From NCBI RefSeq assembly GCF_009834535.1, contig NC_045713.1, forward strand, positions 868,001 to 932,000: 64,000 nt of DNA, read 5' to 3'. The position numbers were made by a program, and so were the translations under genes. The notes under the pieces are model-generated. The model ran no database searches. It was not told the DNA's origin and worked only from the letters and a program-made list of their open reading frames with translations. The stretch comes from Camelus ferus. Lineage: Eukaryota. This document shows, piece after piece, positions 1-47,100 of the stretch. The first letter of the stretch is position 1; the number at the start of each line of letters is the position of its first letter.

Positions 1-337
1 ATGTTTTGACTTACATGTGGAATCTAAAAATAATAAATAAAACAAATGAATGTAACAAAACAGAAAGAGACTCACAGATACAGAGAACAAACTAGTGGCT
101 TACCAGAGGGGAGTGGGGTTGAGGAGAGGCAAAGACAGGGGAAGGGGATTAAGAGGTACGAAATACTAGGCATAAAATTAGTAAGATACAAGGATAATGT
201 ACAGCACACGAATATAACTGATATTTTATAACTTTACGTAAAATATAGTCTATAAAAATACGTAACCACTATGTTTCACATCTGAGGCTAATGTAATATT
301 GTAAATCAACCATACTTCAATTAGAAAAAAAAAAAAA
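1..337 (+). mobile_element. LINE-1 3' end with poly(A) tail (5' part outside window)
   Basis: L1 3'-UTR-like text (ACTTACATGTGGAATCTAAAAA...GTAAATCAACCATACTTCAATT) ending in an A-run at 325-337; near-identical to 23231-23566. Confidence 0.85.
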
Positions 338-442
338 GATAGCCACACCCTGCAGGCTACCCCCAACTCCCACCCACCCAGTGTTGTGAGTGGCACCATG
401 CTGGCTACTGGCATGGGGGTGGGAATGGAGGTAGAAACTCAC

Positions 443-1433
443 AGCTTTAGGACAGCCAGGTTGGCTTCCAGGTCATAGGCATTCTCCTTGGCCTGTGTCT
501 CCACATAGCGCTCCAGGGTGGCCAGATTCTCAGGATTATACCTAGAGGAGAATAAAGATGGATGAACAGAGAGGAGACAGGAGTTGAGCTCAGTTACTCT
601 ATGGGGCCAGGGAGGAGGGTCACTGTAGCCTGCGCCTCTCTCTCTTCCTTTCTTCCCTTTCTTTAGCTCTGTCACTGGCCACTTAGGCTCTACCCAAATA
701 CTGAATCAGCTCTATAATTTCTAATAAAACTTATCCACACCCCAGACCTAAGCCAAAGCTCTAAACTGCATCAGAGCCTTGGGTCTTTTCTAGCTTGCCT
801 CCTCAACCTTTCAGACAGCCAGTCATTGCAGACTGTATACCTAGCCTCCTAGACATCTTTGCTACCCACCCTTACCTTCCCTCCCCAGATCTCATTCTGG
901 TCTAGCCCCGTCCCTCTCCTGCCTAGCTCCCCTCATCACACCCTGACCACTACTGGTTCTAACTAGCTACTTGGTTTGTTTGGATTCTGAACTGGGAACC
1001 CTATGAAAGCATGGCCTGCGGCTGTCTTGGTCAACTCTGGTCTGCAGCATTGCCCAGCACTCACAGACTAGATTTTAGTAAACATGTGTTAAATGAATAA
1101 TGAGAGGTGAAGGAAGGGAGAGATAAAGAGGCACTAAGAGACACGAAGAGACTGAGGAGCAGACACAGAGAGACATTAAGGCAATTAAAGGGGAGAGTGG
1201 CGGTAGGAAACGCTATCTTCTGCCTTTAGGTCTTCGCAGTGCTATTTCCTTAAACATCTCCAGGATGATAGGTGAGAACCCCAGGTCAAGCCCAGGACTG
1301 ACCACGCCTTACTCCAGAAAATTCTCTCCTCCACCCCGCTTGGCCAGAAGCGCTCCCTACCACCGAACTCAGACCTGTCGATACCCTTGAGCGTCTTGCC
1401 CACGTTTGCTCTCACCTGCTCAAACATCGCCAG
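443..1433 (-). pseudogene. EIF3K: EIF3K 5' fragment (exons 1-2 only), copy 1
   Basis: Exon 1 1375-1433 (59 nt; LAMFEQVRANVGKTLKGIDR, initiator ATG replaced by CTG) and exon 2 443-541 (99 nt; [33 protein letters not shown]), with GT-AG sites. The intron beyond exon 2 runs into L1 and off the window. Confidence 0.9.
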
Positions 1434-1830
1434 GACTCCGTCGCCTCCCACACCCGGGGTGAAGCCGCAGACCCGGCCGCCGCAGACCCGGCCGCCGCGG
1501 ACTCCTCGAGGACCGGAAAAGGAAAGACTGGTGGAAACGGAAACTACGTCATTGTTTTCGCTCCGGCGCAGTTAGCGCATGCGTGTATGCTCCACCCGAG
1601 CAGAATCAACGGCGTGAGAAAAAGCCTGGTCTAGCCAAGTGCGCAGGCGCCTTCTCGTGGCACGCTGGCGAGGAGGCGGGGCTGAGGTTTTCCCCGGCCT
1701 CGCGTACCCTGTTCTAGTGCCTGCAGGTGTGCGCGCGAGCTGCCAGGGAAGGAGACGGATCCCTGACGGCGTGCACGCACGTCGCGTTGCTCGCGACCCT
1801 GAACTCAAAAGCTGTGCTGGAATGCACGTA
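1380..1830. promoter_or_regulatory. CpG-rich bidirectional promoter between EIF3K and MAP4K1, copy 1
   Basis: High CpG density between head-to-head first exons; NRF1-like GCGCATGCG (1575-1583) and TGCGCAGGCGC (1640-1650); ETS-like CCGGAA near 1513. Confidence 0.7.
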
Positions 1831-2693
1831 TTAGTCTCCCTTTGGGCCATGGCCAAGTCCCGAGGAAGGTGCTTTTTGAGGTCCCCTTTGCCTCACGCCA
1901 TGATCCCTAAAGCAAGATCCGAGCTCCACAATTTCAAGTCCCTGAACCCGGTCCCACGCTGCACCCTGACGCCAGGGTTAGGGGCCTGCAAAGCTGTTGT
2001 GCTCTGCCTGTCAGGGACAGGGGTGAGGGGCTCCTGGACCCCGCCAGATCACGCCCAGTCCCCATAGGCTCCTGTCTTGTGGGTGAGAGCGAGCACCGCA
2101 TGTGTGTACAGGTTCTGCACACTGCAGGCATGAAAGCACATGCATGTGTCGTATATGTGGAGGTATATGCTCTGGGTACATCCACATGTACGCACACGGG
2201 TATCCAGACACGTGCACGTTGACTGGTCTTCACACTGCACAGGGGGTTACCACTAAGTGCCTTATGAGCCCCACCCCCCACCACCCCGGAACAGTAATGG
2301 ACACTGCATGGTCATCCCCGTGCAGACCTGCCATCTACCGGTTGTGGCCAAAGTCTCAAGCACTCAGCAGAGGTTCAGCTACAGTTTTTAGCTGCCACCC
2401 AGAACGAGGGAGGGAGTGTTAGGGCACCCCCCCACCCCAGGTCATAATTAAGATAGTTTGCATCTGGTTTACATTCAGCCCACGGCCCTGGAGGTGGAGG
2501 GGGGTCCCCTGGGTCCCAAGGCAAGCTGCCTCTCACAGGCTTTCAGGGCCCAGGGGACAGGGGGTGGAGCCGGCCGCACAAGCCTGCTGGGGCAGGAAGC
2601 CAGAGTGGGGAGGGGGAAGGCCACAGCCAGTGGAGGCAAGACGGGTGCAGGGCCTCTGGGGAGGGAGGGAGGTGCCAGCACTCCGAGCCCTGA

Positions 2694-9879
<7,186 letters not shown>

Positions 9880-10126
9880 CGTGATTTTAGCCTCTGCTGT
9901 CATCTTGGTTTTCTGTGGTGAGGGGAGGAGGGCCGAATTCCTGGATGCCTACTGACCCCCCCCAAATTCAACGATCCAGTACAACGTCAGGTGCAGCACA
10001 GACATTATTTCTACAGCACATGGTCACCTCTCCCCCAGCGGCCTTGGGAGGAGGGATTTGGGGACTAAGGGGCTTGCTCTAAGCATAAGGCATTTGAAGT
10101 GGGAGTGAAGGCCAGCTGTGGGTGTC

Positions 10127-10868
<742 letters not shown>

Positions 10869-11274
10869 CTGGGGAGGCAGGGTGCAAGTCAGTGCCTAAT
10901 CTCTGACCAAATTCAGACTGCTCCTTCTTCTGGCTACCCCCTTCTGAGCCTTGCCTCCCATTCCCTAATCTCTCATCTCCCTAATCTCACCCTGATGCTT
11001 AAAAATAATACCTAGCATTTATGAGCACTTACCATGAGACCCTTACTACCTATGAATTTACTTAATTCTCACAATGGCCCTATAAGACTAGTATAATTAA
11101 TATCCCCATTTTACAGATGGAGAAACTGAGGTTTCTCCTCTTCTGAGGTCTCCTCTTCCTCTCCAAGTTCACTTCAGAAAGAAAAATGGGAGGAAAATAC
11201 TTAAGGGCTAATCGTGTATGTAAATTAAGGAGGACCACGGGGGTGCGGGGGTGGCGGGAGATTGTGAAACAGCA

Positions 11275-11475
11275 CAAGTTTTTTTTGTTGTTAAATTTGT
11301 TGTTGAAGTCTACTCAATTTACAATGCTAGTTTCAGGTGTACAGCAAAGCAATTCAGTTACACATACATAGATATTTTCTTTCCCATTATAGGTTATTAG
11401 AAGAAGTTGACTATAGTTCCCTGTGCTGTGCAGTGGGTCCTTGTTGTTTATCTATTTTAAATACAGTGATACATA
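11275..11475 (-). mobile_element. LINE-1 3'-UTR fragment
   Basis: TTTACAATGCTAGTTTCAGGTGTACAGCAAAGCAATTCAGTTACACATAC...TTCCCTGTGCTGTGCAGTGGGTCCTTGTTGTTTATCTATTTT is an L1 3' end in reverse; repeated near 34530 and 62060, related fragment near 59905-60110. Confidence 0.75.
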
Positions 11476-11822
11476 CCTGCTAGCCCCCAGCCATGCTCTG
11501 TTAAAAAGGCAGTTTGATACAGTGGAGCCATCACCAGCATTCAGGCAGCCCTCTCGGCAGAATCTGGGTGACTCCAGTTACGTTACCACTGTCTCAGAGT
11601 CTCCATGGCCAAAGTAGAGACTCTGTAATAAAAGGTGTTGGCATTGTAATTTTAAGAAAGCATGCATCTTGGCTTTTAAAAAAAATCTGAAAAATAAGAA
11701 GCCTTGAAATTCCTTACAATGGCACACATTAGGCAAGCTCCCGAACCAACCATCACATCCTAATCAGAGGAAAAGTAACAAAACATGAAGCAGTATCATA
11801 TTAAATTGTTACACTCTTTTCT

Positions 11823-11910
11823 TTTTTTTTTTTTTAAACAGAAGTCATGAGGATGGTACACAGGACCTCCTTCATGCTAAGCATACACTACCACTGTGCT
11901 TACCCTCCCC
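11823..11910 (-). mobile_element. Degenerate tRNA-derived SINE
   Basis: T-run followed by CAGGACCTCCTTCATGCTAAGCATACACTACCACTG...ACCCTCCCC; repeated near 35070-35172 and 62606-62701. Confidence 0.65.
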
Positions 11911-12634
11911 CTAAATTGTTACATTTTTGACAAATAATTTTCAGGAATTTAACCATAAGGCCTAATGAATGAAGGTCTCGTTATCCTCACTTCTTCCCTA
12001 GGTACTAACCCACTTTGGTGTGTTCTCAACTGGAGGAGCGTGAACAGCCCCCACAGTGGATCCCAGCCCCTCCACACCATGGTACCCACCGCTCTGCCAG
12101 CAGCCCGTTGGAAGTCACTGTTACAGAAATGGCACATCTGTTCTGTGTGGCCTCGGTATGCCTTTGTCTCTGGAGGGACTCCACGTGCCTCTGCCGGGCT
12201 CCTTGGGGGTGGCAGCCTCACAGCTGCACACTCTGCAGGGGAGGTCTCAACCCCCCCTCCCCACTTCCTCCAGAGCCCAGGGGTGATGTTGCACAGGTAA
12301 TATCATCCTCTGAGCAGCTCCAGGTGTTCATGCAAGTGCTTGTTCTGGACACACGGATGCTGGCAACGTGCCTGGTCCAGAGGAAGCCCCTAACCACCAC
12401 CCGGTGAAATCCCCTAGGATTGTTGGGTGAACTGAGGACGCTCCACTGCTGGCAACGTCAAGACCTGGCTCTTGTCCTCCAGCGTCCAAACTATCAATGT
12501 AAGTCTGCCAACTTTTAGTTCTGCATGGTTCTGGAGACAACACGTTCTGCATTACTGATTTTATTTAATCTGATGATGCTGTGACCTGCTAGTCAGTCCA
12601 CCTGAGGGGGGCCCTGCACCAAATGCTGTCAGGT

Positions 12635-12734
12635 NNNNNNNNNNNNNNNNNNNNNNNNNNNNNNNNNNNNNNNNNNNNNNNNNNNNNNNNNNNNNNNNNN
12701 NNNNNNNNNNNNNNNNNNNNNNNNNNNNNNNNNN
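12635..12734. other. Assembly gap (100 N)
   Basis: Run of exactly 100 N, typical of an unknown-size scaffold gap. Confidence 0.99.
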
Positions 12735-12763
12735 GTAAACAGATTTTTCTCTTCCTTCCCCAG

Positions 12764-12937
12764 GCCTGTGGTAGTGGAGACACGCCCAGCAGATGATCCT
12801 ACTGCCCCCAGCAACCTCTATATCCAGGAATGAGTCCCTGGGGTTGGGGGTGGGTGTTTGGAATCAGTCTCTGCACCCCCTCCCCTCCCCAGTGGACACA
12901 ATATAGTGGACATGACATGCCTGTGTCTCCCAATAAA
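12764..12937 (+). pseudogene. MAP4K1: Orphan MAP4K1 terminal exon (copy B2)
   Basis: Acceptor TTCCCCAG at 12763, then intact PVVVETRPADDPTAPSNLYIQE* (12764-12833) and AATAAA at 12932. Confidence 0.88.
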
Positions 12938-14499
12938 TGTGATTTTAACCTCTGCTGTCATCTTGGTTTTCTGTGGTGAGGGGAGGAGGGCCGAATTCCT
13001 GGATGCCTACTGACCCCCCCCCAAATTCAACAATCCAGTACATCAGGGATATAGCACAGACTTTATTTCTACAGCACATGGTCACCTCTCCCCCAGCAGC
13101 CTTGGGAGGAGGGATTTGGGGACTAAGGGGCTTGCTGTAAGAATAGGGCACTTGAAGTGTGAGTGAAGGGCCAGCTGTTGGTGTCTCAGCTAAGCTGGTC
13201 CTCATACTGCTTGCAGGAACAATCACCAGCAGGGGAGACATCCCAACATCTCTCTTGGTACATCTTCCAGACATAAGACTCCTAGGGGTTGGGGTTGGGG
13301 AAGAGTTGGTTGGTCACATCTTCAAATGCTTGATAAGATCTGAGCTTTTTACTGCCACCTGCTGATTGAACTTTTATTAAAATTCTCCATGTCCTTGCCC
13401 ATTTTTCTCCCATTAACACCCCCTTACCTGACCCGTGTGTTCTGTCTCATCCTTGTTTATCAGACACTTCAGGAAAAACCTGGGGTTGGAAGGGCTGTGG
13501 GAGATAAGTCAGAACCAGCCTTACTTACCTTCTCCTGATTGGCTGGCTGAGAACCCACCCACATGGAAGCCACAGCCCTTTCCTAACTGACCAAAGCCCG
13601 GTATCCCCTCCCCGGATGTTGCCGGCCACGGGCCCACCCTCCTGATTAGCCAGCGGGCCCACGCTCACATGTAATTGGCCAGGTTGTGCTCCTCTAGCGT
13701 GTGGGTCTCGAAACCATGCAGTGTCGTATCAAAGTCATCGCTGCCGATGCTGATGCCGCAGATGAAGCACTTGGTCTGTGGGTGGCAGGAAGCATCAGAG
13801 TCGAGGCCCACTTGACACCCCCAGGGTCCTGTAATCCCTCTGGATCGCCCCCTGATATGGCCTACCTCCATATCGTCCCTCACTTGCTGTTGTTGGTCTC
13901 GGAGCTCACCAAGAGCGTCAGTGATCAGACCTGGGGAGGCAGGGTGCAAGTCAGTGCCTAATCTCTGACCAAATTCAGACTGCTCCTTCTTCTGGCTACC
14001 CCCTTCTGAGCCTTGCCTCCCATTCCCTAATCTCTCATCTCCCTAATCTCACCCTGCTGCTTGAAAATAATACCTAGCATTTATTGAGCACTTAGCATGA
14101 GACCCTTACTACCTATGAATTGACTTATTTCTCACCACGACCCTATAAGACTAGTATAATTAATATCCCCATTTTACAGATGGAGAAACTGAGGTTCAGA
14201 GAGGTAACTTGCCCAAAGTCTCACAGTAGGGAGAAACAGAGCCAGGTCAACCAGATCCCGGGCCTGCACTCTCAGAGGAGCTAGTCTGCCTCTGGGCATC
14301 TCCACTCCCACAACCCCGACCAGCACTGACCCTGGATGATGGCCAGCAGGATGACGATGACAAAGAAGAAGAAGGTGATTTCGAAGACCACCCGGTACAG
14401 CTCATATTCATCACCTGCTGGGTCCTCAATCTCGTCCCCAATGCCCCCACCTGCTCGGACACCCACGTACATGTGAAACAGGTAACACTGTGGGGGCAA

Positions 14500-19799: not shown

Positions 19800-21809
19800 G
19801 TCCATACTGGACACACTGAGTAGGCCACGACTTGTCCAGCCGGCTGTGCCTGTCTTAGGTTGTCCTCCTCTGAGGATCTTACCCGTCGTTGGCTATCCAG
19901 CCGTCCATGCTGGACACAAAGAGTAGGCCATCTGTGGTCCAGCCAGCTGTGCCTGTCTTAGGTTGTCCTCCTCTGAGGATCTTACCCGTCGTTGGCTATC
20001 CAGCCGTCCATGCTGGACACACTGAGTAGGCCATCTGTGGTCCAACCAGCTGTGCCTGTCTTACGTTGTCCTCCTCTGAGGATCTTACCCGTCGTTGGCT
20101 ATCCAGCCGTCCATGCTGGACACAAAGAGTAGGCCATCTGTGGTCCAACCAGCTGTGCCTGTCTTAGGTTGTCCTCCTCTGAGGATCTTACCCGTCGTTG
20201 GCTATCCAGCCGTCCATGATGGACACACTGAGTAGGCCATCTGTGGTCCAACCAGCTGTGCCTGTCTTAGGTTGTCCTCCTCTGAGGATCTTACCCGTCG
20301 TTGGCTATCCAGCCGTCCATGCTGGACACAGTGAGTAGGCCATCTGTGGTCCAGCCAGCTGTGCCTGTCTTAGGTTGTCCTCCTCTGAGGATCTTACCCG
20401 TCGTTGGCTATCCAGCCATCCATGCTGGACACAGTGAGTAGGCCATCTGTGGTCCAGCCAGCTGTGCCTGTCTTAGGTTGTCCTCCTCTGAGGATCTTAC
20501 CCGTCATTGGCTAGTCAGCTGTCCATGATGGACACACTGAGTAGGCCATCTGTGGTCCAGCCGGCTGTGCCTGTCTTAGGTTGTCCTCCTCTGAGGATCT
20601 TACCCGTCGTTGGCTATCCAGCCATCCATGCTGGACACAAAGAGTAGGCCATCTGTGGTCCAACCAGCTGTGCCTGTCTTAGGTTGTCCTCCTCTGAGGA
20701 TCTTACCCGTCATTGGCTATCCAGACGTCCATGCTGGACACATTCAGCAGGTCATCTCTTGTCCAGCCGGCTGTGCCTGTCTTAGGTTGTCCTCCTCTGA
20801 GGATCTTGCCCGTCGTTGGCTATCCAGACGTCCATGCTGGACACATTCAGCAGGTCATCTCTTGTCCAGCCGGCTCTGCCTGTCTTAGGTTGTCCTCCTC
20901 TGAGGATCTTACCCGTCGTTGGCTATCCAGCCATCCATGCTGGACACATTCAGCAGGTCATCTCTTGTCCAGCCGGCTGTGCCTGTCTTAGGTTGTCCTC
21001 CTCTGAGGATCTTACCCATCATTGGCTATCCAGCCGTCCATGCTGGACACACTGAGTAGGCCATCTGTGGTCCAGCCGGCTGTGCCTGTCTTAGGTTGTC
21101 CTCCTCTGAGGATCTTACCCGTCATTGGCTAGTCAGCTGTCCATGATGGACACAAAGAGTAGGCCATCTGTGGTCCAACCAGCTGTGCCTGTCTTAGGTT
21201 GTCCTCCTCTGAGGATCTTACCCGTCGTTGGCTATCCAGCCATCCATGCTGGACACAAAGAGTAGGCCATCTGTGGTCCAACCAGCTGTGCCTGTCTTAG
21301 GTTGTCCTCCTCTGAGGATCTTACCCGTCATTGGCTATCCAGACGTCCATGCTGGACACATTCAGCAGGTCATCTCTTGTCCAGCCGGCTGTGCCTGTCT
21401 TAGGTTGTCCTCCTCTGAGGATCTTACCCGTCGTTGGCTATCCAGACGTCCATGCTGGACACATTCAGCAGGTCATCTCTTGTCCAGCCGGCTGTGCCTG
21501 TCTTAGGTTGTCCTCCTCTGAGGATCTTACCCGTCGTTGGCTATCCAGCCATCCATGCTGGACACAAAGAGTAGGCCATCTGTGGTCCAACCAGCTGTGC
21601 CTGTCTTAGGTTGTCCTCCTCTGAGGATCTTACCCATCGTTGGCTAGTCAGCCGTTCATGATGGACACACTGAGTAGGCCATCTGTGGTCCAGCCGCCTG
21701 TGCCTGTCTTAGGTTGTCCTCTTCTGAGGATCTTACCCGTCATTGGCTATCCAGACGTCCATGCTGGACACATTCAGCAGGTCATCTCTTGTACAGCCGG
21801 CTGTGCCTG
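19800..21809. repeat. 103-bp tandem repeat array (about 19.5 units) with 618-bp higher-order structure
   Basis: Units start at 19818, 19921, 20024 ... 21775 with an exact 103-bp period; variant units recur 6 units apart (20436/21054, 20642/21260, 20745/21363). Confidence 0.97.
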
Positions 21810-22540: not shown

Positions 22541-23566
22541 ATCAAAGGAAGCCACATCTTATCCAAAATATACAAGAGTTCATACAACTCAATGTCAAAA
22601 ACCAAAATAAACCAAACCAAACCAAACAAACAAAAACAAACCACCCTGTTAAAAAAAGGGCAGAAGACCTGAACAGACATTTTCCCAAAGATGTACAGAT
22701 GGCCAACAGACACAAGAAAGATGTTCGACGCTGCTAATCACCAGGGAAATTCAAATCAAAACCACCATAAGATATTACTTCACAGCTGTCAGAATGGCTA
22801 TCGTCAAAAGGCAACAAACAACAAAATGTTGGTGAAGGTGTGGAGAAGAGAGAACTCTTGTTGGTGGAAATGTAAAACTGGTGCAGCCACTTTGGAAAAC
22901 AGGATGGAAGTTCCCCACAAAATTAAAAACAGAACTACCAAGTGACCCAGCAATTCCACTCACGACTATATATCCAAAGAAAACAAAAATACCAATTCCA
23001 CAAGATACATGCACATTTTCATGGCAGCACTATTTACAACAGCCAAAATATGGAAACAACCTAAGTGTCCATCAATAAATGAATGGATAAAGAAAATGTG
23101 ACACCTAAACACACACAAAATGGAGTATCACTCAGCCATAAAAGAATGAAATTTTGCCATTTGCAACAACATGAATGGACCTCGAGGCTATTGTGCTTAG
23201 TGAAATGAATCAAAAGAAGACAAATACTGTATGTTTTGACTTACATGTGGAATCTAAAAAATAATAAATAAAACAAATGAATGTAACAAAACAGAAAGAG
23301 ACTCACAGATACAGAGAACAAACTAGTGGTTACCAGAGGGGAGTGGGGTTGAGGAGAGGCAAAGACAGGGGAAGGGGATTAAGAGGTACGAAATACTAGG
23401 CATAAAATTAGCAAGATACAAGGATAATGTACAGCACACGAATATAACTGATATTTTATAACTTTACGTAAAATATAGTCTATAAAAATACGTAACCACT
23501 ATGTTTCACATCTGAGGCTAATGTAATATTGTAAATCAACCATACTTCAATTAGAAAAAAAAAAAA
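22541..23566 (+). mobile_element. 5'-truncated LINE-1 (ORF2 C-terminus remnant, 3' UTR, poly(A))
   Basis: Fragmented L1 ORF2-like translations (KRAEDLNRHFPK, LKTELPSDPAIPL) and an A-tail at 23555-23566. Confidence 0.9.
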
Positions 23567-23671
23567 GATAGCCACACCCTGCAGGCTACCCCCAACTCCC
23601 ACCCACCCAGTGTTGTGAGTGGCACCATGCTGGCTACTGGCATGGGGGTGGGAATGGAGGTAGAAACTCAC

Positions 23672-24662
23672 AGCTTTAGGACAGCCAGGTTGGCTTCCAG
23701 GTCATAGGCATTCTCCTTGGCCTGTGTCTCCACATAGCGCTCCAGGGTGGCCAGATTCTCAGGATTATACCTAGAGGAGAATAAAGATGGATGAACAGAG
23801 AGGAGACAGGAGTTGAGCTCAGTTACTCTATGGGGCCAGGGAGGAGGGTCACTGTAGCCTGCGCCTCTCTCTCTTCCTTTCTTCCCTTTCTTTAGCTCTG
23901 TCACTGGCCACTTAGGCTCTACCCAAATACTGAATCAGCTCTATAATTTCTAATAAAACTTATCCACACCCCAGACCTAAGCCAAAGCTCTAAACTGCAT
24001 CAGAGCCTTGGGTCTTTTCTAGCTTGCCTCCTCAACCTTTCAGACAGCCAGTCATTGCAGACTGTATACCTAGCCTCCTAGACATCTTTGCTACCCACCC
24101 TTACCTTCCCTCCCCAGATCTCATTCTGGTCTAGCCCCGTCCTCTCCTGCCTAGCTCCCCTCATCACACCCTGACCACTACTGGTTCTAACTAGCTACTT
24201 GGTTTGTTTGGATTCTGAACTGGGAACCCTATGAAAGCATGGCCTGCGGCTGTCTTGGTCAACTCTGGTCTGCAGCATTGCCCAGCACTCACAGACTAGA
24301 TTTTAGTAAACATGTGTTAAATGAATAATGAGAGGTGAAGGAAGGGAGAGATAAAGAGGCACTAAGAGACACGAAGAGACTGAGGAGCAGACACAGAGAG
24401 ACATTAAGGCAATTAAAGGGGAGAGTGGCGGTAGGAAACGCTATCTTCTGTCTTTAGGTCTTCGCCAGTGCTATTTCCTTAAACATCTCCAGGATGATAG
24501 GTGAGAACCCCAGGTCAAGCCCAGGACTGACCACGCCTTACTCCAGAAAATTCTCTCCTCCACCCCGCTTGGCCAGAAGCGCTCCCTACCACCGAACTCA
24601 GACCTGTCGATACCCTTGAGCGTCTTGCCCACGTTTGCTCTCACCTGCTCAAACATCGCCAG
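23672..24662 (-). pseudogene. EIF3K: EIF3K 5' fragment (exons 1-2 only), copy 2
   Basis: Exon 1 24604-24662 (ATG>CTG) and exon 2 23672-23770. No exon 3 (YQFNP...) is visible between exon 2 and the tandem array. Confidence 0.9.
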
Positions 24663-25060
24663 GACTCCGTCGCCTCCCACACCCGGGGTGAAGCCGCAGA
24701 CCCGGCCGCCGCAGACCCGGCCGCCGCGGACTCCTCGAGGACCGGAAAAGGAAAGACTGGTGGAAACGGAAACTACGTCATTGTTTTCGCTCCGGCGCAG
24801 TTAGCGCATGCGTGTATGCTCCACCCGAGCAGAATCAACGGCGTGAGAAAAAGCCTGGTCTAGCCAAGTGCGCAGGCGCCTTCTCGTGGCACGCTGGCGA
24901 GGAGGCGGGGCTGAGGTTTTCCCCGGCCTCGCGTACCCTGTTCTAGTGCCTGCAGTGTGCGCGCGAGCTGCCAGGGAAGGAGACGGATCCCTGACGGCGT
25001 GCACGCACGTCGCGTTGCTCGCGACCCTGAACTCAAAAGCTGTGCTGGAATGCACGTATT
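24610..25060. promoter_or_regulatory. CpG-rich bidirectional promoter, copy 2
   Basis: Same NRF1-like and ETS-like motifs as 1380-1830, upstream of the open MAP4K1 copy. Confidence 0.7.
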
Positions 25061-25921
25061 AGTCTCCCTTTGGGCCATGGCCAAGTCCCGAGGAAGGTGC
25101 TTTTTGAGGTCCCCTTTGCCTCACGCCATGATCCCTAAAGCAAGATCCGAGCTCCACAATTTCAAGTCCCGAACCCGGTCCCACGCTGCACCCTGACGCC
25201 AGGGTTAGGGGCCTGCAAAGCTGTTGTGCTCTGCCTGTCAGGGACAGGGGTGAGGGGCTCCTGGACCCCGCCAGATCACGCCCAGTCCCCATAGGCTCCT
25301 GTCTTGTGGGTGAGAGCGAGCACCGCATGTGTGTACAGGTTCTGCACACTGCAGGCATGAAAGCACATGCATGTGTCGTATATGTGGAGGTATATGCTCT
25401 GGGTACATCCACATGTACGCACACGGGTATCCAGACACGTGCACGTTGACTGGTCTTCACACTGCACAGGGGGTTACCACTAAGTGCCTTATGAGCCCCA
25501 CCCCCCACCACCCCGGAACAGTAATGGACACTGCATGGTCATCCCCATGCAGACCTGCCATCTACCGGTTGTGGCCAAAGTCTCAAGCACTCAGCAGAGG
25601 TTCAGCTACAGTTTTTAGCTGCCACCCAGAACGAGGGAGGGAGTGTTAGGGCACCCCCCCCACCCCAGGTCATAATTAAGATAGTTTGCATCTGGTTTAC
25701 ATTCAGCCCACGGCCCTGGAGGTGGAGGGGGGTCCCCTGGGTCCCAAGGCAAGCTGCCTCTCACAGGCTTTCAGGGCCCAGGGGACAGGGGGTGGAGCCG
25801 GCCGCACAAGCCTGCTGGGGCAGGAAGCCAGAGTGGGGAGGGGGAAGGCCACAGCCAGTGGAGGCAAGACGGGTGCAGGGCCTGTGGGGAGGGAGGGAGG
25901 TGCCAGCACTCCGAGCCCTGA

Positions 25922-31661
<5,740 letters not shown>

Positions 31662-32917
31662 TCCGCCCATCGATCCAGCTCTGTGGGGATCCCAGTTGCG
31701 GACTGCTGTCGTCAGTAGAGAATCCTTAAGCTTTGGAGACCCTTGTAATCCCCTCATCAGATTGCCAGAGACCCCAGAGACCCTCCTCGCTTCTAAACAG
31801 ACCCTCAGAGGCCCCCCATTACCATCTGATCCCACAAGAGGCCCCAGAGAACCTCATCTACAAAATGATTCTAGAGACCCCTACCTCTCCGCTCTGCACA
31901 CGGACCCCATAAAATTTCCTATAACCACCAGGACTCCCAGAGACCTCAGAAACCTTGTTCTGATCCCAGATACCCAAGTGGAATCTAAAAACAAACACTC
32001 TATAACCATGTTGAGCCCCCATCGCCCTGATCACAAATCTTGACCCCAAAATGAGACCCCTGTAAACCAAGATCCCTCCCCTGAAGGGACAGCTCCAGTC
32101 CTAAGATCCTGGCTGCAGACCACACCCACACCCCAGTTCTATTCTTTCTATTCCCGAATCCATGTCCCCAGCTCACTGTGTGTCACCTGCATACCACCCC
32201 ACCCCAACCCCCATGGCGGCACATAGAGTTCATGATGCTCAGAGGCATGTAGTCCAGACCCACAGCTGACAAGGTGAGATGCCTCCCCACTGCCCCGCCG
32301 CCCTCCCCTCCCCCTGGGCCACTGCTGACTCTTTCCTATCCCACAGGCTCGCTTACAACCCCCTGGAGGCTTCAAGAGCAGCAGTCCTAGGTCAGGGACC
32401 CTCAGCGTGGGAGGGGGGCTGGGATATGTGTGGGGACCGCCCGAGGCTCATGCCTGTCCCTCCTCAGGAGGAACCTGTCAGAGTCCGAAGATGACTACGA
32501 CAACGTGGACATGTGAGAGAGCGCCTCAGACCCCACCAAGCCCCACCATCCATGACCCCAACCTCAGGCCCTGCTTTCCTTCCACCACTCAGCCGTGACC
32601 CCTGGCTGGACACTCAGTACCCACACCTAACTTCACCCTAACCCTGACCCTCCCACACCAGCCCCCACTCTCCTCCCCACCAACCCTTCACCCCTAACCT
32701 CACCCCAACTCAACCCTGGAGCCCCTGCCACATCCTAGTACCCAGCACTCACGTCATTCACTGATTCATGTTGGGCTGCTGCTCCAGACTGAGCTCCTCG
32801 ACAGCAGGAGCCCTGCCTGCTCTCGCACTGCTGAAGCCCAGCATTGTGCTGGCACACCCTCTGTAGACTCTTTGTGAATATATGTATGAATGAAGGAATG
32901 AATGAATTAACAAATGA

Positions 32918-36459
<3,542 letters not shown>

Positions 36460-36471
<12 letters not shown>

Positions 36472-36950
36472 GTCTCGTCTTGTGAGGCCTGGCTTTGCAC
36501 GGCTGCTGCAGCAGAGGACAAGCCCTCCTCCCCCTCCTGGGGTCTCCGGCTAAGAAGTAAATGCACAGAAGACAGATGAGCAAGGAGAAAAGCGTGGCAG
36601 GTGTGCTGAGGCTTTCCACGTACACAGGGCCCTTCACAGGAGGATGAATTCCTAACAGAGCGGCCAGAGCAGGAAGACTTTATACCTTTTAGATAAAGAA
36701 ACAGTAAACATGTGAAGGCTTGGAGGCTGGAGGGGCTCAGGCGGGGGCAGTGAACGGTGGAGAGCTGTGTCCTGTTGTCCTCTGTCCCCAGGTCTGGGAG
36801 TCGGCAGGGCAGGGCTGGCTCCTCCTTTCAGGGAGGAGGTGGGGGACAGGTCCCAGTGGCTGCCCTCCTGCTGTTGCTCACCTGGCTCCTCCAGCTAGGA
36901 TGTTTGACGTGTCAAGGTGCCGTGCTTGGGGGAACCTCCCAGGGCCCCCC
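36460..36950 (-). mobile_element. Possible solo ERV1-type LTR (MER34/39-like)
   Basis: Reverse complement begins GGGAGGTTCCCCCAAGCACGGCACCTTGACACGTCAAACATCCTAGCTGGAGGA, resembling MER4-group LTR starts; by eye only. Confidence 0.4.
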
Positions 36951-38191
36951 GAGCTCCTGCAGGGGCACCTCTGCTCCCTGGGGGACTGTCAGGTGAGAGC
37001 GGGTGTGTTCCCTGCCATGCAGCAGAGGCTCCCCACCTGGCCAGTTCCTCTCCCGACTGAGCACTCTGGGGCAAGAGCCGTCAGCCAGTCAAGAGACCAC
37101 CTGTAAGTGAGGGTAGCAGAGGAAGGGAGACAAAGACCATTGCTGTCTGCCCTGGACCCACCCACCCCCGGTTCTCGGAGGAGTGCTTTTCCTTTTCCTG
37201 AGTAAATCCTGTGAAATCTTTTGCTGCACAACGCTGTCTCCTGTCTGTTATCTTATCTTTCAGGTGTGACAAGAGCTGGGGTCTTTTCCCTTTCCCTTTT
37301 GGGGTAACAGTTCCATGAGTCCCAAGAGAGAAGGCAGGAAGAGGAACAGATTTAACTGGAACCGAGGGGGCAGAGGCTCCTTGGAAAGAGGCAGTGGCTA
37401 AAGCCTTCCCAGTGTTGGAGAGTGGTGAGTGGATCATGGACTGAAAGAGTATTGCCCGGATTTCCAGTCACTGGGGCATCCCCGGTGACCTCAGAGCAGG
37501 TTCAGGGTAGCTCCAGAGGAAAGGGGCCCGAGGACTTGGAGGAGTGAGGAGGTGTAGACATACAGTGTAGACAAGAGGGAATCGGGCCAAAAAGAGGAGG
37601 CTTGAGATGGAGTGGGAGACCGTTTAGTTTTAAATGGAAGTGACCTGAGACTGTTAGAGGGTGAACAGCAGTCCCTGTGCTGATGGAACAGAGGCGAATA
37701 CATAAGACTGAGGAGCAAGGAACTGAGAAGTTGGAGCAGAAACCCAGCCCCGTCATGGGGTTACTTGGTTTGGGTCTGGGTGGTGCCTGGTGTACCCTTC
37801 TCAGACTCTGAGAATTGCAGATGGAGTCACCCTAAAGTTGAGAGGGGGCTGAGAACAGAGGCATCCTGTCATCAGAAAGGACTTGAGGAGACTAGAAAGT
37901 TCTGGAAGGCTGAAGCCATCATTGTAGGATTAGGGCGGGAAGGGAAAGTGTGATACCCACTCCGCCAAATTAAAGAGGACACGTGGATCTAGACCCCAAT
38001 CGCGATGCGTGGTGTCTGCAACCTGACTGTCGAGGTTCAAGGGTCTGTTTCTTGTGACTATAAAACAACAGAACTGGTGGAACCTAGTCCTTTACTGACT
38101 TTGATGGTGCGTGCTAACCTACAAAACTGGTGGACTTCTAAGTGCTAATTTCACAATTATGTCCTTCCCACCCCTCCCCCCGCCCCCACAG

Positions 38192-41100
38192 GATGCTGAG
38201 TATGCATATTTCAACTTCCCTGAACTTCTCCCTCTGAAGAGGGCTTTAATTCTCCACCTAGAGCACAATACCACCGTCGACGTTCGAACAACCTTTTCTG
38301 GGTGCTTGTCGCAGGAGTGGCAGACTTTCCTGGAGGACAGTTACCCGTATTTCCTGATAGTGGAGGATGAAGGCCTGAACCACCTCCAGACACACCTCTT
38401 CAACTTCTTAATCATTCAGTCTTGGGCGATGAAGGTCAATGCTGTGCTCTCCTCGGGCCAGGTGTCCGACTTCCTACGACTTTATGCGTATTTCATGCCA
38501 AGCAAGCACAAGAACCAGATGTTTTTCCAGAAGGTAATTTGCATCTCAAAGACAGGCTTCTGGAATGTCACAGAATTTTCCAAATTACTTGACTCAGTTT
38601 TATTTCTGCCTCTCCTATGGGAATTATCACCAGTCTCACAGAGAGGTATAGAGAAGTAGTAATAATGATGATTGTAACCCTAAATGCAGCCCTTTACTGG
38701 GCACGTGCGGCCATGACAGGAGTTAGTGTGTGGTCCTTCCAGAGAGCCATTTTATTTACCGTTTGCAGCAGCCCCGTGAGGGAGGGTCAGGGTCACAGGT
38801 AAGTAGTCTGCTCACTGTCAACACACAGTGGGTCTGAGGAGAGGCCTCTGACCCCCCTGCCTGCATATGCTCCCCTGTGGTGTGGGGTGCTGGAGCCACA
38901 GATGAGTGAAATGATGGTTAACTCAGCAGCTTTTCACGAGACAACCATGGAGAGAGTTGAGGAGGAAGGAAAAGAAGTGAAATATGTTTATTTAATAATA
39001 AATCATTAATAGAGCTTTCAAAGTATTGAGAATTTTAATTCCGTGATCTTACTACTTTGCTGTATCAGTATAATTAGTAATTACTGTACTGAAATTTTGG
39101 GAGTCAAAAATGCTCACCAGTTTTATAAATAAATCTGGTTTCTGTTTAATTTTCGCTGCTTAGAACAAATTTAGAATGTGAGGATGACTCTTATTTCATC
39201 AAAATGATTTTTGAGTTAGTTAACACTTTTCACTTTTTGAGTTTGGGGTCACACCCCTCATGATATTGGGGACATCTGGATGGTTGTAATGAAGTATAAG
39301 ATAGAACTCCAATCATTAAACCATTTCCAACTCGAGGTGCCCTCTGTGAGCAGAAACAGACCTGGGACTTGTTTCTGTATTGAGAGGAGGTCCTGTAATC
39401 CACTCACCCTTTTTTACTCTGTGAGAGCGTTTTTTGAATTTGAGTTTGAAATGTCCCTACAAGTTTCCTTCCCAATCTATCCTTCAGGAAAACTTTTTTT
39501 TAATGGAGGGTTTTATTTCTGGTAAAATAATTTTTTCCTAATTTACTGAACTCTCACCCTAGAGAGGATCTTTCACTTTCATTCTGAGGACCATGTAAAA
39601 TGCTGAAGAAGATGCAGTGTATGTTGATAATGGTAGTTACTGGGGAGGGGGGAGTGTTACGCTTTTCTCTGTGTGTATGTTTGAAATTTTTCCTAATAAG
39701 ACACAGTGCATTACATGAGTACAGTGTTTCTTTTTCAGATGTTGAAAGCGTTCTAAAATTACATTGTGGTGATGATTGCACAACTCTGTAAATTTACCAA
39801 AAGTCATTGATTTGTACCCTTAAAGTGAGTAAATTTTGTGTCATGTTAATTATACCTTCATAAAGCTGTTAAAAAAATAAAATGGACCAAATTCCCAGAC
39901 AAAAATTGATTTGGCAAAGACAAAATAGTGCTGTTTGGCAGACTTGAAAAGCACTGTTGATGATATATAATTACTTTAGTGTATTTTTTAATTTAGAAAT
40001 ATATTGTAACAATTATATCTTTAATATATGATTGTCTATAGTTGGAAAGTAATGTGACACTTTATTTATGACAATTTATGTGACTTGCCTATCTTTTACA
40101 GAATAAGAATAACATTGAAAATGCTTATAAAACCCTGATGAAGAAATTGGAAGAATGTCGACTTTTAGCATTGGGACATCTTTTTGGAAATTTTAAATGG
40201 GAAAATATGATGGAAGAGGTACTGAAACTTTAAAAAAAACCTCTTGACTTGAACTGTTTAATGACAAAAAAAAGATGCAAAAGTAGTACAGGGTCCCCAC
40301 TTGCCCCTCCCCCAGCTTCCCTGCATGTTAGCACCTAGTGTGACCACGTGCACCTGTCCAGCCAGGGTGTTAGTGTCAGTGTAACAATATTAACTAAGCT
40401 CAGACATTATTTGTATTTCACTTACATTTGCACTGATGTCCTTTTTACAGACAAAAGGAACTAAACTGAGAAACATATTAGCAACAGATTTTAATAGACC
40501 ACTTTTTCTGATTATCAAAAAGTTCCTCACAAATTTTGTTTTTTACTGGGTGCTACTATTTCTCTAATGCCTGGCATTTAAATTGTTTGAAAATTGGCTC
40601 TAACAAAGAACTCCACAGTTACGAATATATGTACGTATATGCGTAACTGGGACATTGTGCTGTACGCCAGAAATTGACACATTGTAACTGACTGTACTTC
40701 AATAAGAAAAAAAAAGAACTCTGTGATGAACATCTTGATGCCTAAATCTTGGTACATATTTTGTGGTATTTACCTAACCTAGATACCTAGAACTTGAGTA
40801 GTCAATTAAAAGTATCAACATATTTAATGATAATCTTATGTTTTACTAAATAGCTTTGCAGTAACTCTGTACCTATTTATATTCTTATCAATAAAGTAAA
40901 AGAGAAATGACATGTCATATGATTTCCAGTGCTATTATCATTAAGATATACTTTGCAAACTTGGAAGTAAAAAATATGCTAATTGTTCATTTTGTTACTT
41001 AAGAGGTTAACACTTTTATTTTTATTTGTATTTCTTTGGTGAATTATCTGCTCATCTCTTACTAAAGGCTTAGTTGTTTTCTTATTGATTTATAGGAGCT

Positions 41101-44100
41101 TCCTACGTATTGAAGTTTTTAATAATTTCACTGAAATACTTTTTATTTTCTCATGGTAAGTTTTATTGTTTTAGATAGGAATAGTTATAGTTTCGTGTCA
41201 TCAAATGTGTTCTTTGTATTTCTTCCAGTGAGATCACTTATGATTGAAACTGTTTTCCTGAACATCCTGGTATTTTACAATTTCCTTCTGTGACAGGCAC
41301 GTGAAATGATTTCTCTGCTTAAGGAGCTGTGGCCGGAAGGGTCTGACATTCGACGAGTTCTTTGTGTCACTTCATGCTCGTTGTTCTTGAGTTTGTACCA
41401 CAGCGTCTTAGAGAATAGGTCGCAGACTCCCGCTGCTCAGAAAACTAACACCCAACAGGTGCGATCATTATTTTACTGTGAAATACAACACCATGGTTCT
41501 CCATGTTTGAAATTTTATTGATTTTCATTTCCCCAATTCGTTTGATTGACTTTATTTCTCTAATTTATACGAACTTCCAAACAAGGGGTGGGGGAGGCGA
41601 TAGAATTTGTTTCTAAGACTCATCGATGGTGCCGTTACACGATTTGGTGTTTTACTCTGCACGTTTCCCTTAGTCCACGTCTAGTCAAATCTGTCCAGTC
41701 CTCCCCGGAAGAAAGGAGCTGGCACTGGTGAGAGCTGGCCACCGTCCGAGGTTCGGGTCTCCTCACACCCCTTCTGCCCTTAAATCCTCACAGTAGCATT
41801 TTTAGGGGGCGCTGTCATTCTTATTTCCCGGATGGGCACGCTGAGGTTCAGCGGGTCCGGGGAGCAGTCCTCAATCCCAACTGTTAAATGCGGTGTGGCG
41901 TGAACCCAGGGCTGTCTCGTCCCGGTTCCGCTGGTCCTGGAAGCGGCAATCCTGCCTCCCGTCCTCGCCGGGGAGACACGGAAGGGCCGAGCCTTCCCCG
42001 GCTGAGAGGCCGCCGCGGCTTCGCTGTCCCGCTGAGCAGCCGTCCCTGCGCTGCGCACACGCGCTCACACACGGGTCCCCCTGCTGCCGTGGAAGATTCT
42101 CACTAAGGAAAAACGAAGTTTTGTCTCTTTCTTCCGCAGTTTCAGAAATGAGCGGGGCTCACCGTGCTTCTCTTGCGTCCTTTGTGTGAGTCGTGTCCTG
42201 GTGGCGCGTCCCCACGGGGCTAGGCGGGTCATCTTAGGTACCACCCAAGTGACCTACACCCAGTGTCTCTGGAGCGGCTCATCCTTAGGCCCGTCTCGCT
42301 CCGGGGAGGCGCTGCACCCTCTGCGTCTGGGGCCCCGAAACCCGCGGGCACGGGAGGTGGCCAGGTTACATGCGCCCCCGCCTTTCCTGCTCCCGCCGGG
42401 GACGCCTTCCCAGCCGCGCCGCGTTCAGCGCCAGCTGTACACACGAGGCCGGGGGAGAGGACAGCCTCGGGGAGGGCTCCTGAGCCCGGGCCGCTCGGCA
42501 GCCGCGCGTCACCAAGACAGCCCGCCCCTGGGACGTGGGGAGACCGGCCTGCTCAGAACCGGGGCGTCAGTGCGTGACGGCAGCCCGCACGCGGGGAGCA
42601 GCTCGAGGGCTGCCCAGGCGTCGCGCAGCGTCACGCAGGGTCACGCAGCGTCCTGCCGCGTCCTTCAGCCTCACGCAGGGTCACGCAGGGTCACGCAGCC
42701 TCTCACAGCCTCACGCAGCCCCACGCAGCGTCGCGCGGCATTGCGCGGCCGCCGGTCCCTGACGCGCTCTGTGGCTCGTGCAGGGGGAGCGCCGCGGCCC
42801 GGCCCTGAGGGAGGCGGAGGACCTGTGCAGGCTGCGCTGTCTCGCTGCGGTTTTCCTGCTCCGCGCGCCTCTTCCCCAGAGAGCCCGCACCAGAGTCGTG
42901 GCTTCCTGCTGGACCGAGGAAATTCAGACCGCCGTACAGATGGTGAGTGGACGCTCGGCCAGGGGGCCTTGTCTCTGGTGTGTGGGAGCCACGTCAGCGC
43001 GGGCGCCTGAAAGGGTCAGTGGCCTGGTCAGTCCCTTCCGAACTCCAGCAGCTGTGTTTGCGGTAGGACCGGCCGCGCGCCGTCTCCAGCCTGAGGGGAC
43101 CATCTCTCCACTCCGCTTGCGTCAGGGCCGGGGTCGGGTCAGGCCCAGGGTCAGGGTTGGAGCCGGGGCCGGGGCCGGGGCCGGGGTCAGGGCCGGGGCT
43201 GGGGCGAGGGCCAGGGTCAGGGTCAGGGTCAGGGTTGGGGCGGGGGCCGGGTCAGGACTGGGGGCCAGGGCCAGGGCTCCTGGCCCTGTCCTCTGCTCTG
43301 CGCAGCCCGCCTGTCTGCGGGGGCGTCTGCTTCTTGCTTCTTCTTCAGCCTGAGCCCCACCCGTGGCCTTTCCCTCATCTCCTGTCCCTGGAGTGTGCGT
43401 CTCTGAATAAATCTTCACTCAAAAAAAAAAAAAAAAAAAAAAAAGAAAGAAAGAAAGAAAAAGAAAAATCAGGGTTTTGTGATGTCAACTGGGAGAGAAC
43501 AGTGACCGTTGTGTTCTGCTCTTGAGAGCCGTTGAGGAAAGCAGTCTGATTGTTTATTATTTTCGTCCAGTATTGAGGATATTTAGAGAAAATATGTTGA
43601 CTTGAAAAAAATAGCGAAAGAAAACCTTACCCAGGAGCCCACGCAAATCAGTGCTGGTCACCATTGATGTTTCAGTTTATTCTTTTTGGTGTAAATGCGT
43701 AGGTTTTTCTCTGTTATGTGTAATTGTTTCTAACATTGGGACTATACATAGTTATAGGTAAAGATATATATAATGTATAGTCTATACTTTTTTTCTTTCC
43801 ACGTGTTTTCCCAGTTTCTCCCTCACTCCACTCATTCTGTGGTGGCTATTGGCTGTTTTCGATGGACACAGCGCGGTCTGGGAAGTGAAGAGGGCGTTTG
43901 CTGTGTTATAGGTGCTGCTGCTCCCGGGTTCTTCGTGTGTGAGTCTTTCCCTTTGATCTGGGGACTCCATGCCCAGAAATGGGATTAGCAGACCTTTTTT
44001 ACGGATCTTGACACTTAGAATCCAAGTGCTCAGGGAGAGTACTTTAGAACCAGTCAGTTAGGAAGCCAGTCTACAGGTGTCGACCCACCGCACACGCGCT

Positions 44101-47100
44101 GCATGAGTCCTAGGGAGGAAACTGAGAACCTAGTTTCCCCACCCCCAGCACTGTCATAGAGCCCTGTTTTGCGGGGGAGACAGATACTGAATTTTTAAAA
44201 TTTACATTAAGGAGGAACTGCAGGATGCTTTAGTACCTGATAATGAGAAGACTCCACTCAGTCTGAGAAGGATGGCTTCTCCTAAGAAACAAAGAAGTCA
44301 GGTAACCCGAGTCTGTTGGTTTGGGCTGGTTTCACTGGTGGTGCCTCAGCGATGTCTGCTGTGGCAGCTCATGGCGTGTGCGGGCAGCACTTCCAGTCCA
44401 GGTGTGGAGGGGTGGGCCTGGGTCTGCAGTCATGAGCACTTCCAGGGGACACAGGATCATGTACTTCAAAGCCCACTGGGGAACCCTTTCCTTGGCATTT
44501 TCCATCAGGAAGAGGCAGACTGTGGTTCACTAAAGGGATAGAGATCCTGTCTTTAGCACCTATTTAATTCACTTCAGGCATCTTAGTGTAAGTCGTGCCA
44601 GGGCAGTACGCTGAGCCTAGGGATACTGTACGTCAGACACTGAAATAATATGATACAGCGTCAACAATGTTGTGCTATAAGTTTTGCTGTAAATTTACTT
44701 TCGAGAAATACTTAATTTTTTGCCAACTTTGTGTCGGTTGAATTACATGTACTCAACTACTGAATGGTATGTATATATTAATTGTGGTATTGATTTACAG
44801 ATGTAAAGGAGTGCTCTGTATGTGTAATTTTCACTTACCTGAGTTTCATAAACAGTTTTTTAATGCACAGTGGGTATTAAATGAAAAGAATAGTACAGAG
44901 TCTTTCTAAATGATGGGATGTTCTTGGGGGACCCTGCAGGACATGCTCAGTGGTCTTGGCTGGTAGAAAACATCGTTCTTTAACTAGAGTGGTGTGGATG
45001 GCCAGATATGTGGGAAGAGCACTGTTTATTCCGTGCCCGTGTTGTGTGTCCTTGACCTCTGTTACCTCATTCAGACAACACTCCTCATATGTCCTCGTTT
45101 TATGAATGAAAACCTGGGCTCAGGAAGGCTAAGTGGCCCCTTAGTGGGCAGCTAACAAATGACCAGGTTGAGGTCCTGTTTCATCTTAAGCCTGTGCCCT
45201 CCCACGCCCTCTGCTCTCCCCGCATGTTGGGAGCAGCTGATGACCCCTCACCCCTCTTCTGGTCTCCCCCTTCTCTGAGCTTCACTTGGGTAGCACCGGC
45301 ACCAGGAAGCATAACTTCAGGGAGCCTCGGACATTTTGGCAGTAAAAGGCATATTCTGAGGTCTCTGGAGAAACTGAGGAGCTCAGCAAACTGCAGGAAG
45401 GGTTTCATGTTTGCTCCAATCTTGGTACTTGAAGGCCACTTGTGGTGCCTGTCAAATGGAGTGAGTAACGTCGGGGACTTCTGGTGTTCTGTTCTCACAC
45501 ATTATTGCTGACTCAGTGGTGTGATGGGGAAGGATCTGTGGCCTGGGGGTGGGGACAGACCTCACGTGCGTGGTTCCCAAAGTAGGGTCCCCTGACCAAC
45601 AGTATCAGCATCACCTGGGACCTTGTTAGAAGTGCAGATTCCTGGGTCCACCCAGACCCATGGGATCAATCTCTGTGGATGGTGCCCAGCAATCTGTCAT
45701 ATTTAATAACCTTTCCAGGTGAGGCTTATGCTGCATTTTGAGAATCACTGCTCCGTGGCTCTTAGGAAATCTCCTCAGTTTTTATTTGTAGATAAAACTA
45801 CAGTTGAGGTGGGAGGTCCCTGCCTTTTTGGTATGTATGATTTAATCAGGAACCACAGGTAGCCGTCCTGAGTTACCTGGTTGGAGTGGAGCTGCCCAGC
45901 GCAGTAGCCAGCAGCCATAAGTGGACAGTGGGCACTTGAGATGTGGATAAGTCTAAAAGAGACACCATATTTCAAAAACTTAGTGTGAAAAACACGTAAG
46001 CTGTTCTGTTAATATTTTTATATTGATTACACATTGAAATGATAATATTTTGGATATGTTGGGTTGAATGAAATAAGTTAAAATGAATTTCAGCTTGTTT
46101 CTTTTATAATGTGACATCCAGAAGATTTGAAATAACATTTACAACTTGCCTGTTTGCCTGTGTTACACTTCTGTTGGGTTACTCTGGATGCAGTGCCACA
46201 TCGATCGAGATGACAGGAGAGCCTGAGTGTTTTATCAGTAAGGGAGTTTAGTGCAGAGAGCTGGCCTTTTTTTCCCTCTGAACCTAACTCCTCAGACTCT
46301 AACACTGACGAAAGGATGACTCCACTCACTCAGAGAAGTTACTGAACTCTTGTCTGCCTTGCTCTGTGCTAAGCATGCTCGGGGAGACATCCTGCCTGTG
46401 ACTGGTGGGGGGACAGATGCACTTCTGTTAACTCTGTGGCTGCACAATGATGTAGGCTAATGGGAATCTTTGAGTTTGAAGGTTTCAGCATCTTCTAGAT
46501 CCTTGAATGATCAAATGCTCCTTATTTTTTTTAATGCTCTTTTGACCTGGAAATAAAATGGAAAACATTAAATCCTAAGTAAATATTGTACATTTGAAAG
46601 CAGTGTTTCTGTAGTCTTGGATTTGTGGGTTACAGTAGGAGAAAAAAATGTATTAGGCATGAAATACAGATTTCTATGATTCAGAATACAGAACTATGAT
46701 GAATTCATTTTTTGGTTAGTTTGATTTTATTTTAGCTTTAACCTTGCAAGGTGTAAAGCGCTCATCATTAACCAGCCCAGAAGGGCTCACATCAGTAAGA
46801 AAAGGAGGAGCCTGGCTACCTTACCCTACGTGTTCAAGACCATGTTAGAGTTTACTGCTAATGTAAAAATTGTCAATAACTTGGTTTTATTTCCAATTTT
46901 CAGAAAAACTGGTGTGACTATTTCATCCTAAGTAATATAAATGTTTTTGAATTTTGGAATCTGAATTTAACTCACCTTTCCGACTTAAGTGATGAGCTTT
47001 TGTTGAAAAACATAGCATTTTACTATGAAGAAGAAAATGTTCAAGGTACCACCTTAGTATATTATAATAAGTATACTTTTATCCAGAGGTAGACCAAAGG

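Follow-up and report, generated by a model that had tools for sequence, protein, structure and literature searches.

The stretch of Camelus ferus DNA analysed here (64,000 nt, CM020785.1:868001-932000 of assembly GCA_009834535.1, hereafter the window) holds a place where intron sequence derived from RYR1 gives way, inside a MIR element, to sequence that leads into DDX60. RYR1 is a muscle gene, and DDX60 the gene of an interferon-induced antiviral helicase. Is the point at which they meet a true rearrangement and, if it is, in how many copies does it exist, when did it arise, and by what kind of joining?

Organisation of the window

A comparison of the window with itself revealed three large matches: 1-12634 with 23231-35905, 9674-12634 with 60445-63434, and 32918-36471 with 60445-64000. 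The first repeated unit (1-9677, duplicated at 23231-32921) carries 5' exons of EIF3K on the - strand and kinase-domain exons of MAP4K1 on the + strand, collinear with a 3' fragment of a ryanodine receptor gene. This fragment, called A1 (9678-11133, - strand), consists of the last coding exons and part of the MIR-bearing intron. Its paralogues are A2 (32922-34386), A3 (60449-61915) and B2 (12735-14196), the latter being a more distant relative of the 1.46-kb piece (94% identical). The RYR fragments of the window bear the NCBI name "ryanodine receptor 3-like". They are assigned here to RYR1, because EIF3K and MAP4K1 adjoin them as they do at RYR1, EIF3K-MAP4K1-RYR1 being the known neighbourhood of that gene.

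Two assembly gaps of 100 N interrupt the window, at 12635-12734 and 60345-60444. The contigs that follow them both begin immediately past an (ATGA)n microsatellite, which in copy A1 occupies 9640-9677, and this placement accounts for the contig breaks. A third run of N (54495-54695) is a mask and no gap: the public record around the annotated 701-aa DDX60 fragment, otherwise identical to the window from 28159 on, has letters there. The gap-free contig between the two gaps (12735-60344, 47.6 kb) contains both the A2 junction and B2. The alpaca Y chromosome was considered as a place for the array and rejected, since the paper on it lists no such genes and the window is C. ferus sequence of autosomal style.

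The junction at base resolution

Copies A1, A2 and A3 are collinear with B2 through CTGAGGTT (11126-11133, 34379-34386 and 61908-61915; 14189-14196 in B2), and diverge from it completely afterwards. In B2, the MIR is unbroken at the homologous position (14189-14204, + strand), where CTGAGGTT is followed directly by CAGAGAGG. The sequence past the break point is the MIR core GAAACTGAGGTTCAGAGAGG, with one mismatch to the core motif, and then comes the RyR1 pore exon. The motif used for this identification, GAAACTGAGGCTCAGAGAGG of the conserved MIR core, is found at 14185-14204 of B2 with one mismatch and in two further copies in the window, where 0.01 would be expected by chance. The intact MIR of B2 represents the ancestral state on the RYR1 side.

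In the A copies, the sequence past the break reads TCTCCTCTT CTGAGGT CTCCTCTT. In A1 (junction 11126-11157, + strand) the MIR-derived CTGAGGTT stops at 11133 and foreign sequence runs onward. The A2 junction (34379-34410, + strand) is identical to it, with the switch at 34386/34387, and A3 (61908-61939, + strand) has the same breakpoint at 61915/61916, with two changes within the repeat, G>T at 61912 and C>A at 61934.

The junction consists of an adjacent imperfect direct repeat. Its first unit (11126-11142, 17 nt) is CTGAGGT+TT+CTCCTCTT, the opening 8 nt of which are MIR sequence, and its second unit (11143-11157, 15 nt) is CTGAGGT+CTCCTCTT. The two units are directly adjacent and match at 15 of 15 positions with one 2-nt gap, as in a templated insertion, where inserted bases copy nearby sequence. 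Adjacent duplications of such quality were found at two independent places in 63.6 kb of the window, the junction included, so that a chance location exactly at the breakpoint has a probability of about 1 in 1000-2000. The position of the repeat on the breakpoint is not due to chance. The repeat itself is pyrimidine-rich, of low complexity and slippage-prone. Alignment places the breakpoints at 11133, 34386 and 61915, and the intact MIR of B2 at 14196, to the very base that the original prediction had proposed, and the 15-17 nt imperfect duplication with CTGAGGT that it had described at the junction is likewise there.

An exact look-up of the two ORFs at the junction returned no record, and a 31-nt pattern from the foreign side gave no match in a metagenome scan.

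The same junction in Camelus bactrianus

A cluster of RYR fragment models led to the C. bactrianus model XP_074201518.1 (assembly GCA_048773025.1, CM109923.1; locus L006). On the reverse strand of that locus, at 11011/11012, the junction is present base for base, including the 17+15-nt duplication. Because this independent assembly carries it, the junction is not an assembly artefact. On the evidence of the two assemblies, it is real and shared by two Camelus species. In 20 public runs (10 studies, 3 organisms), 55-66% of the 31-mers sampled from a 2-kb stretch centred on the junction were present, a figure which speaks for a wide occurrence of the stretch but is not specific for the joint.

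Origin of the foreign sequence

The foreign block was compared with the native DDX60 loci of C. ferus (L001), C. dromedarius, C. bactrianus and alpaca, each with 10-kb flanks. These loci are intact in the four camelids, and the foreign block is collinear with all of them. Positions 36050-60344 of the window are 97.8-99.6% identical to native C. ferus DDX60, and thus class as a segmental duplication, defined by a length of 1 kb or more and an identity of 90% or more with another, intact locus. In the coordinates of L001, where the start codon is at 10001, the copy is made of three parts. Window 36050-37055 corresponds to 1-1006 (+ strand) and is a copy of the 5' flank, 2.0% diverged; 37056-37926 corresponds to 2229-3098 (+ strand), an 870-bp island of 5' flank between two deletions; and 37926-60344 corresponds to 11837-34269. 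The deletions, of 1.22 kb and 8.74 kb, take out the DDX60 promoter and first coding exons. The first coding exon retained (DAEY..., 38192-38524, + strand) encodes the PIN-like_DDX60 domain (E 8e-56). The two deletion joints (37055/37056 and 37926) have microhomologies of 0 and 1 nt and contain no inserted bases. The two-deletion structure is common to A2, A3 and the C. bactrianus copy.

The proposed continuity of the foreign sequence with DDX60 in the second copy was borne out in A2, and extends to A3 and to C. bactrianus. The block had also been expected to be the DDX60 intron that precedes the DAEY exon. It is DDX60-derived from 36050 on, but most of the mapped pre-exon block is intergenic 5' flank (L001 1-3098), 7-10 kb upstream of the start codon, and only the last 265 bp ahead of the exon are intron.

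The first 1.66 kb of the foreign block (34387-36049, + strand; also 11134-12634 in A1, 61916-63578 in A3, and the C. bactrianus copy) lie beyond the native sequence compared. Since homology reaches the very edge of the native sequence in all four species, this segment is presumed to come from the far-upstream flank of DDX60. The 701-aa array DDX60 model, used as a query, brought up no other fragment models from camelids, and we found no paper on a camel DDX60 duplication.

With the junction, the proximal edge of a duplication specific to Camelus is located to single-base precision; this duplication put a headless DDX60 behind MAP4K1 and RYR1 fragments.

How many copies carry the junction

The number of copies was addressed by comparing the A paralogues with each other and with C. 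bactrianus. To the right of the junction (11134-12634 versus 34387-35905), A1 and A2 show no substitution in about 1.5 kb, and to its left a single one in 1 kb. Around the junction they differ by 13 small deletions, mostly of 1 nt and up to 4, all of them in A1. Such one-sided deletions point to an under-polished, deletion-biased consensus, and frameshifts in the contig 1 region should not, without reads, be taken as biology. Further upstream, A1 and A2 are 1-5% apart, the differences being unevenly spread. They share four derived sites, not present in A3, C. bactrianus and B2, within 1 kb to the left of the junction.

Copy A3 is of another kind. Its first 450 nt or so (60449-60900; 9545-9995 on the L006 reverse strand) are 4-6% away from both A1/A2 and B2, about 6% in the case of A1/A2, and 0.9% from the C. 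bactrianus junction copy. This stretch represents a third lineage of RYR1 fragments, so that two paralogue lineages have recombined in the junction copy. The C. bactrianus locus also holds an A2-type piece (L006 reverse strand 1-9370, 0.2% from A2). It ends at the equivalent of window position 33450, within the last RYR1 coding region, and continues, with no junction, into 8.2 kb of unrelated sequence, in which neither a Pfam match nor a tandem repeat was found, nor any similarity to the window or to the other loci.

Within the DDX60 body of A2, the sequence turns from array-type to native-type at about 40489: 38 of 39 informative sites are array-type before this point, and 44 are native-type after it. 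The native-type part (40489-60344, + strand) is 0.13-0.14% from native C. ferus and 0.06-0.16% from the C. bactrianus gene. The A3 and C. bactrianus DDX60 copies, on their side, remain about 2% diverged from native. Either the A2 contig is chimeric, or a very recent conversion has taken place.

By sequence, there are only two types of junction-bearing copy, one being A1/A2 and the other A3, shared with C. bactrianus. The number of real junction-bearing copies is at least one and probably two; three are not established. In the original prediction, the same junction in three slightly different copies was held to argue for a real rearrangement. The rearrangement is real, as C. bactrianus demonstrates, but the case for three slightly different copies is weaker than proposed, A1 and A2 being nearly identical around the junction.

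It is quite possible, although we stop short of calling it probable, that the junction is real while its amplification is largely an effect of assembly, with one or two copies in truth, and with A1 and part of the A2 contig redundant or chimeric. Such a reading draws on the near absence of substitutions between A1 and A2 combined with the one-sided deletions of A1, on the A2-type left part that ends in C. bactrianus without reaching the junction, on the native-type DDX60 body of A2, and on the flank tree, where A2 and A3 group together against C. bactrianus. It is opposed by the four derived sites confined to A1/A2, by the 1-5% that separates them further upstream, and by the existence of three separate NCBI gene models.

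Age of the junction

Distances in the DDX60 flank were used to date the duplication. Divergence among array copies is 0.3-0.7%; it rises to 1.9-2.35% against native Camelus and to 3.9-4.15% against native alpaca. For the native loci, Camelus and alpaca are 3.1-3.4% apart, and C. ferus and dromedary 0.75%; the transition bias is normal. In a maximum likelihood tree, the array copies form a clade (support 100/100) whose sister group is native Camelus, and alpaca falls outside both. Measured along the native path, the duplication node is about half as deep as the Camelus/alpaca split and about three times as deep as that between dromedary and Bactrian camels. The tree thus places the origin of the DDX60 copy after the camel/alpaca split and before the split of the Camelus species. 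The breakpoint is several million years old.

Between A-type and B2-type RYR pieces the divergence is about 6%, therefore the RYR1 block was duplicated well before the junction formed. The junction may serve as a presence/absence marker, predicted to be present in Camelus and absent in Lamini (llamas and alpacas).

Chromosomal setting of donor and recipient

In dromedary, the 3' end of DDX60 is 7.3 kb from the end of the chromosome record and points to it. This end (positions 88000-88768 of the dromedary locus, L002) carries degenerate TTAGGG-like repeats, so that DDX60 is the terminal gene there. In alpaca, the DDX60 locus spans 12,283-98,742 of its chromosome, with DDX60 12-22 kb from the chromosome start. 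In both species the donor is chromosome-terminal and faces the telomere, as expected for a terminal duplication. The C. ferus and C. bactrianus assemblies place native DDX60 far inside the chromosome, and such internal versus terminal placement suggests scaffolding differences.

On the recipient side, 86,510 bp separate the C. bactrianus junction from the chromosome end, towards which DDX60 points, and the annotated DDX60 copy encodes 1660 residues. Subtracting the two deletions from the dromedary terminal segment leaves about 80,450 bp, versus these 86,510 bp, of which the first 10 kb past the junction were compared. The layout of donor and recipient is consistent with duplication of the entire terminal segment to another chromosome end, by unbalanced translocation or break-induced replication (BIR).

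Human subtelomeres are patchworks of blocks from chromosome ends, joined by end joining or BIR. The camel locus resembles their interchromosomal duplications in being a mosaic of unrelated gene fragments (EIF3K/MAP4K1/RYR1 beside DDX60), and in having a terminal donor (dromedary, alpaca) that stayed intact and a recipient 86.5 kb from an end (C. bactrianus). It departs from them in C. ferus, where the block lies, facing inward, at 0.87-0.93 Mb from the start of the chromosome.

How the two sequences were joined

Our preferred explanation, which we hold to be fairly probable, is that of a real breakpoint of the Camelus stem, where a decaying EIF3K-MAP4K1-RYR1 copy was joined to a DDX60 segment, probably in a polymerase-based way. 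A duplicated copy of EIF3K-MAP4K1-RYR1 (3' end) would have broken within the MIR of the intron that immediately precedes the third-from-last RYR1 exon group. The broken end would then have been fused with a duplicated piece of the chromosome end that carries DDX60, a piece starting some 11.7 kb ahead of the DDX60 start codon. This would have taken place in the stem lineage of Camelus, after the llama/alpaca split and before the dromedary/Bactrian split. The event was duplicative, since the native DDX60 locus is intact. The joining itself may have been Pol-theta end joining or microhomology-primed BIR: a polymerase would anneal at a short microhomology, copy a few bases, dissociate and re-anneal, leaving an adjacent duplication.

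MMBIR has been described to yield templated insertions at microhomology (PMC8421209), and the camel joint plausibly reflects a microhomology of 7-8 bp with a templated duplication. As at MMBIR or Pol-theta (TMEJ) junctions (PMC8421209), a short direct repeat sits at a non-homologous joint and its first unit starts in one parent. The neighbouring joints of the camel block lack these marks, and the one parent known here is that of the RYR1 side, from B2.

A more ambitious scenario, which we regard as doubtful, would explain the entire block by one BIR "telomere capture" in the Camelus stem, with 8-nt priming, one stutter and two jumps, that carried an 80-90-kb DDX60 segment to the telomere. The end broken in the MIR of the RYR1 pseudogene would prime on about 8 nt upstream of DDX60, the one stutter would give the 17-nt duplication, and two jumps within 3.5 kb would give the 1.22- and 8.74-kb skips. 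BIR yields non-reciprocal translocations, with template switching up to about 10 kb from the invasion (PMC3459980). The camel copy resembles BIR with early template switching (PMC3459980) in that it is one-ended toward the telomere, leaves the donor intact, and shows two jumps, of 1.22 and 8.74 kb skipped, less than 3.5 kb from the start of the copied tract. It differs from yeast BIR, which was started from long homology, as the camel joint shares at most 8 nt. The two skips could equally be later deletions. Against a tidy one-event picture speaks also the C. ferus position, inward and 0.87 Mb internal, and the two other joints in the block look like the work of classical end joining. If this scenario were true, the locus would be a base-resolved germline fossil of MMBIR, and a second DDX60, headless, would have ended up behind a kinase fragment of MAP4K1.

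End joining by plain microhomology, or close to blunt, with nothing templated, is an unlikely source of the junction. The DDX60 flank would in this case natively have a tandem CTGAGGT..CTCCTCTT repeat, within or next to which the break happened to fall. The blunt or 1-nt overlaps at the neighbouring joints are what such a process would leave, and the motif is a low-complexity polypyrimidine, but an 8-nt match between MIR and donor is required exactly at the break, or else CTGAGGT has to occur by chance 9 nt downstream (simple counting gives about 0.2-0.4%), and adjacent duplications of this sort are rare in the window. The native donor site might already hold the tandem repeat, or be without CTGAGGT.

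Still less probable is a simple junction made first, followed by a replication-slippage duplication of about 15-17 nt that became fixed before the copies spread. As the duplication is in all copies of both species, its order relative to the joint is inseparable, and a T-run indel separates the two units, both of which suit slippage. Two independent events would however be required at one nucleotide, and the full MIR CTGAGGTT kept in the first unit is a better fit to a one-step origin. Finally, a pure artefact, in which a chimeric contig fused RYR1-like and DDX60-like reads, is hardly credible: the assembly is noisy and two of the three junction copies adjoin 100-N gaps, but A2 is interior to its 47.6-kb contig, the flanks are about 2% diverged from the native gene with a normal transition bias, and the same junction in another species and assembly refutes it unless both share a reference-guided step.

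The junction is an ordinary scar of segmental duplication, well resolved but unsurprising, and mechanistically one more example of a well-known class.

Gene models and RYR1 pseudogenes

The C. ferus assembly mixes, at this place, real paralogues with redundant or chimeric stretches, therefore local gene models, including the one that spans the junction, are not to be taken as genes. That model (XP_032316920.1/XP_032316923.1, "ryanodine receptor 3-like", 147 aa, 33376-34987, - strand) begins with MCAI at 34987 in the DDX60-flank block and splices over the junction into RYR1-derived exons. It is a predicted chimera.

A tandem repeat with a 103-bp unit (19.5 copies, 92% matches) occupies 19800-21809, after the last recognisable RYR1-like exon of B2. 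It was not found in the native DDX60 loci compared, nor in the C. bactrianus junction locus. This satellite was considered as a template of the bases inserted at the junction and was rejected, the likeness, judged by eye, being too weak.

Exons were searched singly. The exon of the RyR1 pore and selectivity filter, reached from B2 at 14305-14490 (- strand), matches RyR1 residues 4881-4942. This exon and its neighbours have non-conservative changes. Among the RYR1-derived pieces, several conserved residues are altered and one exon is frameshifted, and these pieces are pseudogene copies. All camel copies have, in one RYR1-type exon (10607-10714, 13668-13775 and 61388-61495), a 6-nt insertion encoding GI or SI. 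Models from C. bactrianus and dromedary have the same insertion, and RYR1 fragments of birds do not. The camel RYR1 copies therefore descend from one pseudogene ancestor.
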